From contig NW_027367729.1 of the NCBI RefSeq assembly GCF_046119375.1, positions 1-55,419 on the forward strand: 55,419 bases of DNA, written 5' to 3'. Numbering within the stretch: the first letter of the stretch is position 1; each line of letters starts with the position of its first letter. The translations under genes and the position numbers were made by a program. This DNA comes from Phyllobates terribilis. Taxonomy: Eukaryota. The notes beneath the pieces were generated by a model. That model ran no database searches and had not been told where the DNA came from. It saw only the letters and a program-made list of their open reading frames with translations. Positions 18,293 through 53,204 of this stretch are shown piece by piece.

Positions 18293-19294
18293 ATTGGAGC
18301 TTCTCCTGTTCTGGAAATCAGTTACTTCTGCAGGGTTACTTGATTAAAGGAAGCAGAACTTGCTATTAAGCATTGCATTTGTTAAGAACTCGTACTAAAT
18401 GGCATTGTTATTGGTCCTTTTTGGTTAAGGTTAAGACTATATTAGCTTTAAATTTCAGTTTCCAGTTTTAGATCTTACGCATCAGAATAACTAAATGTTG
18501 TTACTTATTTGGGAGCAGTATAAGACTTCTAGGTCGCTTACCAGTCAATACTTATAAACACACCGGATATAATATCATACTTATAATCACATTCATATGT
18601 TAATATCCCTATCTATCTCATGTTTGTGATTACTCCTATATCCATTATTTCATATCTTTGATATCCATATTAGACTGTCATATCTTATGTCTGACCTTAA
18701 TAACATCATCTGATCAATTTGGGTTGTGTAAGTACCTTTTTTCTTCTTTTTTTTCTTTCTAAATGCACATTAAAAAAGGCGTGCCAGTCTTGTAAAATCA
18801 TGTATACTGGCACGCCGCTTAAATTTAAACAAACACACCCTGGCGGCTGGCTAGCACGTCTAATTTTGGCATGCTAATAGTTTTGCTTTCTCCAAATTAT
18901 TTTTCCTTCCCACTTTATCCCAAACATATCCATCTTGTGCGTGCTATACGTACACATGCAAATTGAGCATGCCAAAAGGATTGCATTTAAAAAAAAAAAA
19001 TTGGATTACATTTAGCCATTTGCTAAATTTATACTTCAAATAGTCTCATATCTCGTATCCTTTGACAGTACATTTATTGTGTTATATGATTACTCTGAGC
19101 CAAGCCTGTCTGGTTCGATGAATGTGACAAAGATGAAGCATTTACCCACACAAAGGGAAATCATGATTAACTTATATCATAAGATCAAATCTGGAGGATA
19201 ATAAGAGAGCTGTGGATCAGCAAAAATTGGATCAAACTAGACTAAGACAGCAACAACCAAGTAACTTGCTGCGAATAGTACTGACAGAGTGTTC

Positions 19295-21707
19295 TTATTC
19301 CCATCAATCGTCGCAGGGGGCTTCGATGTGATATCTTGGACGACTCGGTTTATACCTCTAACGCTGTTACATATCTTTCGCGCCACATCATCCAAGAACT
19401 TGTGCTCGAAGTAGTACCTAAAACATGTACATAGGGTTTGGATATACAAAAGATGAAAACCATTCAACAAAGATATGAAATGTAAGTGATTTAGAGATTT
19501 ACCAATCTGCTGTCATTCCATCTTGACTTGTAATAGCCCTAAGAGCAACAGCTCGTCCATATGTTCTTTGATCACCTTGAACCCCAACGGTGTTACCAGG
19601 AAGCAAAACCACGAATGCTTGCCATATAATGTCATAAAGCCCAGCATCCTTAATTGACTGAATAAAGATCTCATCAGCCTGCCAAAAGAAGGAGATTAAC
19701 CCATAAACTTAACGGTTACTTAGGGTTAGATCCTAATCCATTACACTTACCAGACGAAGTAGCTCCAGTCCATTGCCCTCAGTTACATCACCTAAGATAC
19801 GAACTGCAAGACCAGGTCCTGGAAAAGGATGTCTCTTTAGAAATCCTACTGGTACATTCAAAATCTTACCCAATGCTCTGACCTACAATACACACCATCT
19901 GCAAGTCTTAGATACAATTTTTGAAATAGAATCTTAAACATGATATAGGTTTCAGACCTCATCCTTAAATAGAAGTTTCAAGGGTTCAATGAGCTTCAAT
20001 TTCATGTCCTTGGGAAGGCCTCCGACGTGTGGTGGCTCTTGATTGTGTGGGAATGGTTTCTTCCACTCCCAGGAGGTGGACATGATTCAATAACATCGGG
20101 GTATAAAGTTCCTTGCACCAAATAAAGGGGCTTTTCCCTAATTTCTTCTCTAAATCGTGGGCGAATTGGTCAAAGATATTAATGAACTCCCTTCCGATGA
20201 TTTTCCTTTTCTTTTCAGGATCTGTTACGCCCTTGAGCTCACTGAGAAACCTCTCAGTAGCATCAACACAGGTCACGGGCAAATGAAGATCTTTTTCAAA
20301 TGTGTCCATAACACGCTCTTGCTCCTTGTACCTAAACAATGCATGAAAGTTACGAGGAAATCACCACTTAGAAATATATAATGAAGGGAAAAACTGACCT
20401 TAGTAAACCATTGTCAACAAATATACAGTGAAGTCTATCTCCAATAGCGTTGTGAACGAGAGTTGCAGCAACTGTGGAATCTACACCACCGGATAAAGCA
20501 CAGATAACATGATCATCAGGGCCAACAGTGCTCTTGATAGACTTAAGCTCTTCGTTCATTACATCTTCCATTTTCCAGTCAGCATGCACTCCGCATATAT
20601 CAAAGAGGAAATAACGGAGTGTGTCCATCCCTTGTGGTGAATGTGTAACCTGTATAAGATTTCATAGCTCCATTAGACTAAGCAAGAGCAGAGTTCATCA
20701 ATACATATAAGCATCTTCTATCAAAATATAAAAAATTGGCATTGCTTCAGCACATTAACGAATGTACTTATGTCGGCATTGCTTCAATATATGTGAAGTC
20801 ATGTTAACATTCAATTTCCCCTCTGCTTTTTTGTGGGTTTGGTTGAATCCTAAATGCTTTTCAATGATAAACAAATAAATGAGATGCAGGAAATAGCCAA
20901 CAGCCCTACCAAAAGTGTTTTATACTACTAGTAAGATAAGTATAAATGGATTCATAAATTTGTGTACAGTATTTTTTCAGGGCCATACCATCAGCAAAAA
21001 ATGTCAGACCTTTAAAAAAGAAGTATTATCAAAAGGGACAAAGTTTACTAAGAACATGACAATAAGAATCTGCAAACAAGCACTGGACCAAAGCAAAAAC
21101 ATAACAACAACCCAATAAAGTAAGCACGTAAATTTGGAAACGTTTCAGCGGTACCTCAGGGTGATATTGAAGCCCAAAGAACTTCCTTTCACGATCTTCA
21201 ACGGCAGCAATGGCCCCTTGCTGGCTACGAGCCACCACCTCAAACCCCTCGGGAAGACGGGCAGCCTCATCACCATGGCTCATCCAAACAACCTGCTTAT
21301 CACCAACACACTTATTCCCGAACAATCCATCAGCCACCGCCTTCTCCACTTCAATCTCCATCCTCCCATACTCATGTTTCTCCCCCACCGTAACAACTCC
21401 ACCCAGCTTCTGCACAATCAACTGCAATCCATAGCAGACACCAAGTACAAAGACGCCATTACGACGAACGTAATCAACGAATCCGTCGGCGAAGGAAGGA
21501 GCATCAGGAGCGTGAACAGAGTGAGGGCCTCCAGAAAGGATGATGACGCGCGGGGAGAGGTCAGTGATGGCGGGAGAGAGGAGAAGTACCGGAGATGCAG
21601 AGGGAGAAAACGGAAAGGGAACGGATTCGTCTGGTAATGAGGTGCGTGTATTGCGAGCCGAAGTCGAGGATGAGGACGAGATCGGACTTCACATCTTGTG
21701 CGTCCAT
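19295..21707 (-). CDS. GMPS: GMP synthase (glutamine-hydrolysing); exons 21707-21155, 20649-20399, 20331-19958, 19882-19751, 19678-19503, 19417-19295; four 1-bp frameshifts in this sequence
   Basis: Motifs: [65 protein letters not shown] and KPPATIEWE. Splice sites are intact. Indels lie near 21572, 20133, 20028 and 19304, so this could be a pseudogene or assembly error. Confidence 0.93.
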
Positions 21708-47949: not shown

Positions 47950-48071
47950 CTCGTCACGAATGCGTTGACAAATGACTCTTGGGGAGCTCGTGATGAGGAG
48001 CTTTCCCAGGCGCGTCACGAGCGTCTAAATTTTACTCGTGACGAGTGTCTTTGTGGATACTCGTGACAAAC
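47950..48071. repeat. TCGTGAC/GTCACGA cluster ending in CAAACACGGAC, the probable right end of a DNA transposon
   Basis: Four exact motif copies plus one variant. The reverse complement GTCCGTGTTTG resembles PIF/Tourist TIRs, but no clean TAA/TTA TSD follows. Confidence 0.5.
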
Positions 48072-48344
48072 ACGGACACAATGGTTACTAAAAAAATTAA
48101 TACAAAACATAGCAATCATCTATACAAAATGAGACTAATGATCAAAATTCTTTATGAATTTCTTCGGGGGAAAAAATTTCACTCATGAACTACTTCTGTT
48201 AAAGAAAACAAGAGAGGCTGTTAATTGCAATTTGTTAGAGAAGTTGTAAAACATACAAAAGGAGGATATTTTTTGTCTTCGAAATTGGGTTTACAAAACC
48301 CCCTCTGATATTTCCCCCCTTTCTGCAACTCCTCCTAACCAGCC

Positions 48345-48514
48345 ATTCGAATCGCAGCATAGCCATTAACCACTTCGGCTATCTCCTCCATTTCCTATCC
48401 TGCGATTCGAATCGCAGCATAGCCATTAGCCACTTCGGCTATCTCCTCCATTTCCTACCCTGCCGATTCGAATCGCAGCATAGCCATTAGCCACTTCGGC
48501 TATCTCCTCCATTT
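48345..48514. repeat. 60-bp tandem repeat, about 2.8 copies, upstream of the PPR gene
   Basis: ATTCGAATCGCAGCATAGCCATTA(A/G)CCACTTCGGCTATCTCCTCCATTT at 48345, 48405 and 48466. Confidence 0.93.
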
Positions 48515-49538
48515 TTCTTTTGGATGCTTGGTTGCAAATCAAGACTCCTTATCTGAATCCTTCCTTCTTCTCCGAGACTACCGCGCAGTCATTGCTCGAC
48601 GCCGCCCGCAGCCACTGCTCCCCTAATCTCCCGCCCGTGTTTTCCGATTCTCCAACATGCAGTACACCACTCCGTCGAGGTCTTACCTATTCTTTTCTAG
48701 TGCTGTTTCCACTTCCAATGATTACATTTCGAAATGTTTCTCTGATGTGGCAGTATATTATGATAATTTGTCTTCTTCACTTATGTAATTGCGAGGAAGA
48801 ACAGTTCTGGAATTCAAAATCTGAACTCTCTTCTATGCTTTACAGGTAAGCTAAGACCACGTAGTAATCACTTCTTCTCATGGAATTGTAAAGATCAAGG
48901 ATGACAATACGACCTGTACGTGTGTACAGTTTATGTGGGAGGAGAAAGGAAAATAATGAAAAAGAAGAAGGTCTATCATCGAAGGTGAAGTTCTATTGCT
49001 CTACCGTTTGGTTGTACATTCTTGTTCGATATGGTGTATGATTGACCAATTGATTATCTTCTGAACTTTGATAATTTTATTTTCTGTTTGGGTTGAACTT
49101 TCTGAATAGTTGTTTTGCTCATGGTTTCTCTTCAAGCAATTTAGTACATAGCTTGCATACACTCTTCTACATGCATTGATTATTGAAGTATGGCTTCTCT
49201 CGTCACTTATAACTCGTAAGAAATAAGTAATTAGTGTACAGATTTGGAGTTTGAACCTTTCCATAGAGCAGAATTGACAAGTGTGTTTTCTATGCCAGAA
49301 TATGTCACTCTATATCAATTTAATAGGAAAATACTTGTTCTGCAAATAATGTGAAACATATGAACTTTGTACCATTTTCTTACGCGTTAAGTTCAGATAA
49401 GTTTATTATTTTGAAACACTAGCAATCATCCCAATGACTTAAACTTGGATCTTTTTCTCTTCCTATACTTGGGCTTAGCAGGGAATTTCATTGGTCTGTG
49501 ATGTGTTTGTTTGCTGCAGTACTTTTTTATGCATATAG

Positions 49539-51470
49539 GTGAAATATTTATGTGTATTGAAATGTCAAAATCAGGTCCTGTTGGAAAGTGGTAGGAAGCG
49601 AATGAAGGTTATCTCATCACAGGATGTTATGAGGATACTGAAGTCAATTTCAGACCCAAATGATGCTTTTGAACATTTCCAGTCAGTTGGAAAGATGTCT
49701 GATGTATTTCACACCACAGAAACTTGCAATTATATGCTTGAAGTCTTGAGGGCAGAAAGAAAGACCACCGACATGGCATTTGTGTTTGATCTGATGCAAA
49801 AGAAAATGATCAACAGGAATTTAACCACTTACTTGACTATTTTCAAAGCATTTGATGTGAAGGGTGGTATACGTCAGGCTGTATTGGGACTCGAAAGAAT
49901 GAGGAGTAATGGACTTGTGTTGAACGCTTATTCCTACAATGGCTTAATACATTTGCTTATTCAATCTGGATTTTACTGTGAGGCTTTGGATGTATATAGA
50001 AGGATGATCTCTGAAGGGCATAGCCCGGTCTCAAGACCTATTCAGTACTTATGGTTGCATTAGGGAAGAGAAGGGATACTGAAACTGTAATGGATTTGTT
50101 AGAAGAGATGGAAAGTCTGGGGTTGAATCCAAATGTTTGTACATTCAACATTTGTATCAGAGTTCTTGGTAGGGCTGGGAAGATCGATAAGGCATATGAG
50201 ATCTTAAAAAGAATGGATGCTGAGGGTTGTGGGCCTGACGTGGTTACATACACAACTCTAATAGATGCATTATGTAGATCTGGAAACCTCACTGATGCTA
50301 AATCCTTGTTTATAAAGATGAAGTCCACAAGCCAAAAGCCTGATAGAGTAACATATAGTACCTTGATGGCTAAATTCAGTGACCATGGGGACTTGGAAAA
50401 TGTGAGGGAGCTTTGTACTGAAATGGAAGCTGACGGATATAATGCTGATGTTGTTACTTGCACAATACTGATTGGTGCTTTATGCAAATCTGGGAAAGTT
50501 GATGAAGCATTTGAGCAGCTAGAAACCATGCAGAAGCGAGATATTATGCCCGATCTTCATACTTACAACTCCATTATAGGTGGGCTTCTCAGAGTGAATC
50601 GATTAACCGATGCATTAGCTCTGTTCGACAGTTTACCTTCTGTTGGGATTCAACCTACAGCTTACAGCTACAGTCTGTTCATAGACTATTATGGAAAGTG
50701 TGGAGCATCGAGTAAAGCTCTTGATATGTTTGAGAGGATGAAAAGAAAAGGAATTGTTCCTAATGCTATCACACATAATATAGTCATATCTGGGCTTGTG
50801 AATTCGGGCCGTTTGGACGAAGCTGTAGATATGTATTATAATCTTGTGAGTCGCGACTTTTCTCCGGACTGTTTTACGTACGGGCCTCTGATAGATGGGC
50901 TTGCTAAATCCGGAAGATTGGAGGAAGCGAAGATGTTCTTCGATGAGATGTGTGATTATGGATGCGAACGCAACGCTGCTATATATAGCATCCTTATTAA
51001 TGGATTTGGTAAATCAGGCGACGTCGAAAGCGCTGCTGATTTGTTTAAGGAGATGATTAGGGAGGGAATAAGGCCGGATATTAAATCTTACTCGATTTTA
51101 GTTGATTGTTTGTGTATGGCTGGGAAGGTTGATGATGCTTGGCGTTACTTTCAGGAGATTGAATCTAAAGGCCTTGATCGTAATTTGTTTTGTTATAATC
51201 TTATGATTGATGGGTTTACGCTTGATTTGTATACGTATAATGCTATGATACTTCATTGGGGAACGTTGGGATGATTGAAGAAGCGAGTAAATTGTATGAA
51301 GAGATGGAGTTAAAGGGTCTTAAGCCTAATGTGTTTACGTACAATGCTTTGATTCGTGCTTATGGGGTTTCTAGGAATCGGAGCAAGCGTATGTTGTGTA
51401 TCAGAGAATGATTATGGGTGGATGCATACCTAATGCTGTAACGTTTCAGCATCTTCCTAATCAGTTTTAG
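49539..51470 (+). CDS. PGR3: PGR3-like chloroplast P-class PPR gene with two in-frame internal deletions and three 1-bp frameshifts; N-terminal exon(s) unresolved
   Basis: [67 protein letters not shown] and the terminal LPN match Arabidopsis PGR3 (At4g31850) as I recall it. May be a pseudogene. Confidence 0.88.
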
Positions 51471-51609
51471 AATCTTCCGAAAGAAAGGTTGCTTCTTCAT
51501 CCGCTTCTGTTATACATACATATGTGAATTTGAACCTCTAATCTTATTGCATATCAGAAAATCCGTGCTTTTAACAAAGTGTGCTGACATATCATATGTA
51601 ATAATTAAG

Positions 51610-52458
51610 GTCATCTTTTGCTGCTGTGGTTGCTAAAGTTGCTTCACCTTTCTTTTCAACCGTTGCATTATCAGTTTTTCTTCTGGTTTCACTCTAATGT
51701 TTGGTTCGTGACTTGTTTCCTGTGATTGCACTAATAAAGAATCAACAAACAGTTATCATCAAACTACCACTGGCGCTATGGTTAAATAAGGATGAATAGG
51801 ACCTTTGCAGGTTCTGCAGGGGCCTCCTCCATCTTCAAGGTGTCTTTACTGCTTGTTTTGCCTTCTCAAATTATGCTTAAACCATGGGCCAAACTGTCAG
51901 AAGTAAAGCTAGTTAGCTTGTTCAAGTACGTTGTATCTCTAATGTAGTAACACTGATATAGACTTGAATACAATTTACCTATCTGGTGAGATGATGAGTT
52001 TCCCATTCCTGTACTCATGTTTTTTGTTCATCAGATGATAAGAAATCGTAGACACCACAATCTCTTCTATGTAATTGCTGAGGATTGATGTGTCTGAGAC
52101 ACAAATAGAACCAAGATCATCACATTCAACATAGTTAGATGCAAGTGGTTTCTGTTATCTGGATGCTGGATCATCTTCATATCCTCCTCCAGCTGAGATT
52201 TCCAGCTAACCAGATGAGTCTCTTCTTCAGTGGGCTTGATTTCGATGTTATAGGGGAATAGATCAAATATTTTATCATCCAATTCTCCACATTCCCTATC
52301 TGGATCAGTTATGAGTGAGCCTAAAATCAACACTGGCCCTGACAGTCTCTTTATCATCTTGAGCAACAAGTTGTACACCCTTTGAGATTTAGAGAGGAGC
52401 TTGTCGACATCTCTAGGTACAAAGTGATAGGATATGTTTTCGACACAGTCAATAAAAC
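51610..52458 (-). pseudogene. Fragment of an AAA-ATPase gene (At1g64110/At4g28000-like); exons 52458-51979, 51893-51803 and a remnant
   Basis: LSGPVLILGS, LFPYNIEIKP, LVSWKSQLEEDMKMIQ, ECDDLGSIC, NYIEEIVVSTISYHLM and SLAHGLSI. Frameshifts and a stop are present, and no Walker motifs are seen. Confidence 0.85.
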
Positions 52459-53204
52459 CTGCCAAATAAGTAAGCAATAGCTTTTATAGATCACATCTTA
52501 ATACTATATTCTGGATTACAGACAACATGCAAAGAGAAAATCCGTGCTTGATAACTTGTTGCGACTGTGAAGTCTGATTATTAGTTGGGTAATAATTAAG
52601 GTAATGTTCTTACTTGAATTTGGTATTCACAACATGGTCATGTTTTGGTAATATGAAATGAAATCATCTGCAACTCAAAGTGCAGTTATACTCACAAAAG
52701 CTCTCACTGCTGATGTCTTCCAGTGACAAGCTTCTGGCACTAAGATAAGATTTGTAACTACTGTTTTTTTTAATCCTTGCGTAATTTAGAACTGGACAAT
52801 CTTTTGCTACCTCATCAATCATATTCAGTATATATGTATCGTCATCATTGCCTCTGAATATGTACACAAGTGTTGAGAGCGTCACAAGTTCATCTTTCCA
52901 AGGTTTTTAGTGTGCAGATTTATGAACATTGAGCTGAATTTGTGAGAGATTATGGTCAGATGGCTTCCTTGAAATAAAAATTCAATGTTTTTAAGCAGTT
53001 TCTTTTTGAACAAATGTTTTTAAGCAGTTTTATTTTGCTGCAATGCAGTGTTATTAATTCATTTGTGGGCATAGACTATTTTGTGAATTTATAATTTTTT
53101 CTTGTAATGGGTTATCCCATATTTATCCAAATTGTGGGATACACTCAGAGTATGTATAATGCATCGATTCAACTCGGGTAGGAAAATCATTACTTATCAG
53201 ATTC

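Follow-up and report, generated by a model that had tools for sequence, protein, structure and literature searches.

A 55,419-nucleotide (nt) contig filed under Phyllobates terribilis (RefSeq assembly GCF_046119375.1, NW_027367729.1, positions 1 to 55,419; hereafter, the window) carries at 49539–51470 on the forward strand a plant gene for a pentatricopeptide repeat (PPR) protein. We found that this locus is an orthologue of PGR3 (At4g31850) that retains PPR motifs 1–10 and 22–28 and is without motifs 11–21. Because its amino-acid changes have accumulated in a near-neutral pattern and neither a start codon nor a transit-peptide sequence is joined to the motif array, we regard the locus as probably a young unprocessed pseudogene, that is, a recently disabled and drifting allele or homeologous copy of PGR3.

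A PGR3 orthologue with ends conserved and centre missing

Analysis of open reading frames (ORFs) and their translations showed that 49539–51470 reads as a P-class PPR protein in four successive frames. The three main pieces (49539–50060, 50051–51271 and 51256–51408) are P-class PPR sequence, while the fourth frame (51375–51470) runs to the C terminus and ends with TAG at 51468–51470. The Pfam profile PPR_2 matched 11 stretches of the 407-amino-acid (aa) piece (E=3.4e-122), and the 35-aa layout is kept across the retained motifs. The initial annotation had reported no nonsense substitutions, and indeed no PPR piece contains an internal in-frame stop.

Comparison with Pistacia atlantica (locus L002) placed each part of the array. 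Window positions 49554–50027 align with residues 84–237 of the first Pistacia ORF (60% identity), 50024–50764 with residues 240–486 of the same ORF (66%) and 50765–51253 with residues 311–493 of the second ORF (59%, gap allowed for); the last two pieces align with the Pistacia C terminus. All five pieces are collinear with both the Pistacia and the Salix PGR3 loci. The same blocks occur in a 942-aa Lycium protein named 'At4g31850, chloroplastic' at NCBI, its N-terminal block being 61–65% identical, and At4g31850 is PGR3 (PMC5897788). The PGR3 identity proposed in the initial annotation is thus borne out by collinear matches at both the N- and C-terminal ends, and the best PGR3 similarities place the source plant among the eudicots.

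On this basis the forward strand holds a pre-PPR segment and motifs 1–3 at 49539–50021 (frame 0), motifs 4–10 at 50024–50763 (frame 2; from the Pistacia alignment and the 35-aa layout), motifs 22–25 with the first 13 residues of motif 26 at 50765–51217 (from the second Pistacia ORF), and motifs 27–28 with the C terminus at 51218–51470. With PGR3 (At4g31850; maize Zm-PGR3) the window copy shares the P-class architecture, the collinear blocks of motifs 1–10 and 22–28 towards the N and C termini (both blocks within 59–66% identity) and the characteristic C-terminal '...QLPNQ' end; it differs in being without motifs 11–21, part of motif 26 and a recognisable joined transit-peptide sequence.

The full-length PGR3 references used here were reassembled from genomic loci, and the Salix and Pistacia loci are themselves frame-broken. 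In Salix suchowensis (L001, 5001–8340) and P. atlantica (L002, 4962–8350), PGR3 is split into two to four ORFs, and the annotated proteins are truncated or intron-containing (417 and 837 aa, against about 1100).

There is no second PGR3 copy in the window. Word-index protein searches, in which generic PPR words were saturating and which were length-limited, yielded nothing near-identical to the short PGR3; their matches were fragments of full-length orthologues. In a full HMMER search of representatives, PPR paralogues dominated and PGR3 was represented by a single poor model (Withania). The 407-aa ORF has no record in public gene calls, and exact-pattern scans of metagenome contigs gave 0 matches both for the junction between motifs 10 and 22 and for a nearby invariant 26-mer.

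A real, in-register deletion of eleven motifs

When the array is laid out in rows of 35 residues, motif 10 continues directly into the motif numbered 22 in Pistacia. The skipped Pistacia stretch of about 387 aa corresponds to eleven motifs of 34–37 residues, which gives a full array of 28 motifs, in agreement with PMC6212717. The initial annotation had described a central deletion in frame and in register, which stands, and had put the loss at about ten motifs, which does not: eleven are gone, namely 11–21 of 28.

We compared the locus with assembled contigs from four sequencing runs, X1–X4; such contigs drop rare variants. X2 comes from another study and bears another organism label than X1, and X4 also bears a different organism label. 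A 4620-nt X4 contig, roughly 6–7% diverged, is collinear with window 48876–51594; between 50763 and 50765 it carries 1129 letters, so that the window's net loss at this junction is 1128 nt, or 376 codons. On both sides the break falls inside the Asn codon of the motif-ending 'PN'; the motifs stay in 35-aa register, and none of them is chimeric.

Two contigs cross the junction without an insert: X1 record 6 (50732–50907, 1 mismatch) and X2 record 11 (50714–50935, 2 mismatches). As contigs from two studies bridge it, the deletion is not an assembly collapse, one of the conditions under which the initial annotation would have withdrawn its claim. The longest direct repeats in 48000–52500 are imperfect and shorter than 26 nt. 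We conclude that the 1128-nt loss is a real DNA deletion.

A second deletion breaks motif 26

The initial annotation had also described a second in-frame loss of about 22 aa, and a 66-nt loss was confirmed by the X4 contig and by loose ends in X1–X3. X4 yields two pieces, 50765–51217 and 51212–51594, that overlap at 51212–51217 with about 66 extra nt between them, and X1, X2 and X3 contigs have loose ends on both sides of 51212–51217 that read into the missing segment. This segment encodes the '...RVDEAL..LF.ELKTR' part found there in orthologues. GGGTTT direct repeats flank the loss, and the lone remaining copy lies at 51212–51217 (+). The loss is in frame but out of PPR register, with 22 residues gone from inside motif 26.

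Position 51242 distinguishes the two forms. Contigs with A at 51242 always have an aligned piece that starts at 51212, while contigs with the window's G at this position are present in X1 and X2 as well and are distinct from those carrying the 66-nt segment. Deleted and undeleted forms therefore probably coexist in the X1–X3 samples.

The frameshifts are most likely assembly errors

The reading frame follows the path 0>2>1>0 (start coordinate modulo 3), with one step per single-base deficit. Each deficit lies inside a short homopolymer: the first (A) at 50021–50022, the others behind 51255 (T) and 51378 (C), all on the forward strand. All four runs have the extra base at all three sites; behind 50021 it is found at 4.87/4.87 in X1, 8.96/8.96 in X2, 12.2/12.2 in X3 and 13.9/13.9 in X4. 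The extra bases restore the conserved readings KPSLKTY, LILxLG and NPEQAY. Three non-coding sites (48525, 48889 and 51674) likewise carry an extra base in all four runs.

The GMP synthase (GMPS) gene at 19240–21707 on the reverse strand has the same kind of break, with at least 4 single-base deficits inside contiguous conserved exons. Its GATase domain and its ATP-pyrophosphatase part are each split across three frames. Profile positions 1–23 and 82–179 of the GATase domain lie in different frames, too close together for an intron, and the residues matching E. coli GuaA 265–327, 333–359 and 360–384 occupy three frames within about 350 nt. The broken GMPS fits a base-dropping assembly and not a pseudogene.

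All ten events are bases missing from the window, and the simplest reading is that the assembly drops single bases about once per 400–600 nt. The three PGR3 frameshifts are thus most likely assembly errors and not biology. This is what the initial annotation had suspected of its 1-bp deletions, which it likened to those in GMPS; the extra bases in four runs and the GMPS breaks of the same polarity agree with it. Frameshifts in this assembly should not be taken as biology.

The array is without a recognisable start and transit peptide

Similarity to orthologues sets in at about 49539–49554 and no earlier, right after an in-frame TAG at 49536–49538. The 350 nt upstream of 49539 contain many stops in all frames; this is the region (49190–49538, +) in which orthologues encode the transit peptide. 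In Salix and Pistacia the plastid transit peptide lies in the same ORF as the array; the window array is without a joined start and transit peptide. Across the whole window, we found neither the conserved N-terminal 'NWKKHKKKQVGFCGF'-type block of eudicot PGR3 nor a convincing upstream transit-peptide exon. A protein started at the first in-frame ATG (49602) would be without a transit peptide.

A possible relic start, MASLVTYNS, lies at 49190–49216 (+). Splicing from this ATG to 49539 was considered and rejected, as the frame is not kept.

Compared with X4, the 5' region has many indels that are not multiples of three, and it therefore behaves as non-coding. Within it, an 83-nt stretch (49423–49505, with ends CA..TG) is replaced by 7 nt in X4. 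Farther upstream, at an insertion site between 49092 and 49093 (+), the runs have sequence that the window is without: 31 nt in X1 and X2, matched by loose ends in X3, and 23 nt in X4.

Substitution on the window haplotype is near neutral

The 36 displayed coding differences comprise 27 nonsynonymous and 9 synonymous changes, giving an omega of about 0.79 over 1475 nonsynonymous and 391 synonymous sites. For changes assigned to the window's branch, those at which X4 shares the letter of the other runs, the ratio is 18:7 and omega about 0.68. Values of 0.3 or less were rejected both for all displayed differences (p=0.006) and for the window branch (p=0.04). Divergence to X4 was 6.0–7.3% in the coding part versus 5.4–6.9% in the flanks. 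Substitution on the window haplotype is near neutral, which fits the relaxed selection that the initial annotation had considered.

At columns invariant in eight orthologues, the window deviates at 12 of 130; this 9.2% falls within the range that a leave-one-out analysis gave for phylogenetically isolated orthologues and is only suggestive alone. Among the departures, S>G, Y>C, V>T and N>D are private to the window haplotype, the runs keeping the conserved residue.

Most retained motifs match the orthologue consensus at the residues that specify RNA bases (positions 5 and 35). About eight such code residues differ, in motifs 3, 5, 8, 10, 22, 24 and 25. Several of these changes are private to the window haplotype, and the sister versions in the same runs are conserved. 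Code positions account for three or four of the roughly 18 private nonsynonymous changes, slightly above expectation and not significantly so.

A more conserved version occurs in the same samples

A second, more conserved version of the locus is found in X1–X3; it is free of frameshifts and retains both the 66-nt segment and the conserved residues. The start of one X1 piece, whose letters are relative-like, falls exactly at 50765, as does that of the X4 piece; this would be expected of a full-length form. From these contigs we infer an intact partner version of PGR3 in the same plant samples. The sister version has a few unusual residues of its own, for example two changes at the 'GCGPD' motif end, G>E and D>N.

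The X2 contig that bridges the junction resembles the window, and the N-terminal region of X2 is present as a single version without the window's private changes. This would place the deletion first, with the window haplotype gathering further changes afterwards.

Some X1 and X2 contigs follow the gene to 50676 and then continue into unrelated sequence (CGAATTTTTGTAAGTG...). This CGAATTTTTGTAAGTG loose end has no match in the window, and these contigs may stem from a third form of the locus in which motif 10 is interrupted by an insertion or rearrangement.

Origin and status of the shortened array

Together, these observations suggest a simple history. A microhomology-type deletion between the 'CCN AAT' (Pro-Asn) codons that close motifs 10 and 21 in equivalent positions would have removed 1128 nt, and another between two GGGTTT repeats a further 66 nt, reducing the 28-motif array to 16 intact motifs and one broken motif. 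The haplotype would then have gathered amino-acid changes almost as fast as expected under neutrality, some of them at residues that specify RNA bases, and the loss may have been tolerated because these plant samples also contain a better-conserved version of the locus. We infer that the window copy has lost its function and that another version compensates for it.

Unprocessed pseudogenes and degenerate alleles of PPR genes are common in plant genomes. As in such cases, the window copy sits at the same locus and between the same flanks as a relative's full-length form, its deletions are flanked by microhomology and its substitutions are near neutral. Unlike typical PPR pseudogenes, it has no confirmed stop or frameshift, and both deletions keep the frame.

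Several observations weigh against a pseudogene. The coding part differs from X4 by only two indel events, both multiples of three, while the flanks, with at least 8 indels in 1.4 kb, predict about 12 for the coding part (P=6e-4). This deficit indicates that the frame was maintained for most of the time since the split from X4, with relaxation being recent; it also ruled out an old pseudogene shared with X4, which we had considered. On the private branch about two indels are expected, and the chance that both are in frame is about 1/9. A maintained frame and frame-keeping deletions would also be expected of a short form still in use. The same 5' architecture is found in contigs carrying undeleted forms, so the missing transit-peptide sequence may be an unrecognised upstream exon and not a lesion. 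In addition, the nonsynonymous-to-synonymous ratio rests on 36 coding among 42 displayed differences, of 294 in total, and the full-length central region was not directly seen in X1–X3. The assembly-error account of the frameshifts has its own difficulties: no contig of the window's own haplotype covers 50021, and the extra base accounts for only about half of the depth at 51255 in X2 and at 51378 in X3. The frameshifts may thus be real in the window's haplotype, which would strengthen, not weaken, the case for a pseudogene.

Known PGR3 functions bear on whether the remaining motifs could still work. PGR3 binds the petL 5' UTR and the rpl14-rps8 spacer, and it stabilises or activates these RNAs. 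According to the summary of Fujii et al. 2013 in PMC8191804, petL RNA stabilisation needs the N-terminal 16 motifs of PGR3, and code-predicted matches lie in the central segment of both known PGR3 binding sites (PMC6212717); motifs 11–16 and the centre of the array are gone from the window copy. Like the engineered PGR3 truncations and point mutants covered in that summary (Fujii et al. 2013, via PMC8191804), the window copy is a PGR3-derived array with fewer motifs. In that experimental work the N-terminal 16 motifs are reported to be enough for petL RNA stabilisation; the window copy keeps only the first 10, fused to the last 7. Engineered truncations and designer PPRs replacing PGR3 at petL provide a yardstick for what a shorter array can do. 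We know of no experimental test of motifs 1–10 combined with the last 7.

A functional short PGR3, that is, a 17-motif protein that is expressed, imported through an unrecognised N-terminal exon or presequence and serving a changed or reduced set of plastid RNAs, would account for several features: two deletions that preserve the frame, the larger of them with the motif register exactly intact; the absence of nonsense substitutions; frameshifts that are probably errors; fewer frame-breaking indels than the flanks would predict; and a junction form seen in two studies. The three or four private changes on the few RNA-code positions would then reflect adaptation. We consider such a protein unlikely, however, given an omega of about 0.7–0.8 with changes at otherwise invariant residues, the out-of-register 22-aa loss in motif 26, the loss of motifs 11–16 that the PMC8191804 summary reports as necessary for petL RNA stabilisation, the loss of the central code matches to both known sites (PMC6212717) and an array with no start codon or transit peptide joined to it. 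Moreover, no run listed as holding the stretch is on record as RNA, and a more conserved version coexists in the same runs. A natural re-engineering of the array with a new target code, as the initial annotation envisaged for an expressed short form, is disfavoured by this evidence (for motifs 11–16, as far as that summary goes), including private changes at code residues that are conserved in the sister versions. In its specific form, a segregating expressed allele with motifs 1–10 fused to 22–28, imported through an unrecognised upstream exon, retuned in motifs 3, 5, 8 and 22 and serving a new or narrower RNA set, the idea is quite improbable; if true, nature would have run an experiment on how a long PPR array can be shortened and recoded.

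Decay of a sole PGR3 copy throughout the species, its full function being unneeded, for example after plastid ndh loss or reduced photosynthesis, would match the relaxed substitution pattern, the unusual 'GCGPD' residues of the sister version and the unseen full-length centre in X1–X3. It is nonetheless improbable: PGR3 also serves rpl14-rps8, plastid ribosome accumulation and petL (PMC6212717), so PGR3 should still be needed after ndh loss alone, the sister version retains conserved residues and the 66-nt segment, and the relative X4 has the whole array at the same locus. The remaining alternative is a collapse of the repeat array during assembly, the plant itself having both the central motifs and the 22-aa segment. 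It draws on the repetitive nature of PPR arrays, on an assembly prone to single-base deficits and on contigs with the 66-nt segment in the same sample. We regard it as very improbable, as independent short contigs from X1 and X2 bridge 50763/50765 with 1 and 2 mismatches, respectively, the PPR motifs here are without long exact repeats able to collapse, and at 51242 the X1 and X2 contigs that resemble the window are separate from those with the 66-nt segment.

A young unprocessed pseudogene is ordinary gene decay in a plant contig, and it comes with a warning about a base-dropping assembly. Its value is modest: it provides a natural, exactly in-register deletion of 11 motifs in the longest well-studied P-class PPR protein and suggests that microhomology at conserved Pro-Asn motif ends can remove whole PPR units with the register unbroken. 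If the plant is identified, the allele could be used to test how much of the PGR3 array the expression of petL, rpl14-rps8 and ndhG needs.

Source of the contig and flanking features

The gene content of the window is that of a plant: PGR3 and a plant-type GMPS, together with the Sirevirus and Harbinger elements described in the initial annotation. The stretch is present in only one organism-A sample, and its words are almost absent from the other listed organism-A runs. The contig probably consists of plant DNA that contaminated an animal assembly or was mixed into it.

Cu_bind_like and Sas10/Utp3 genes are the upstream neighbours of PGR3 in Salix, Pistacia and a metagenome plant contig, while the Withania neighbours differ. 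The metagenome contig (L004, scaffold BAND20-1...scaffold_744, 4942–8355) carries the Cu_bind_like gene followed by PGR3, in a gene neighbourhood that matches those of Salix and Pistacia. A tblastx search with the PGR3 flanks of Salix, Pistacia and the metagenome contig gave no match in the window, where the upstream 9 kb are filled with transposons.

Just upstream of the unique PGR3 flank, 48333–48513 consists of three tandem 60-nt units, 83–93% alike, with internal inverted repeats. Read depth is higher to the left of about 48880, and this leftward rise indicates repeat or transposon DNA at 48333–48513. On the reverse strand at 52067–52477, some 600 nt past the PGR3 stop, lies an exon-like ORF that probably belongs to a spliced neighbouring gene.

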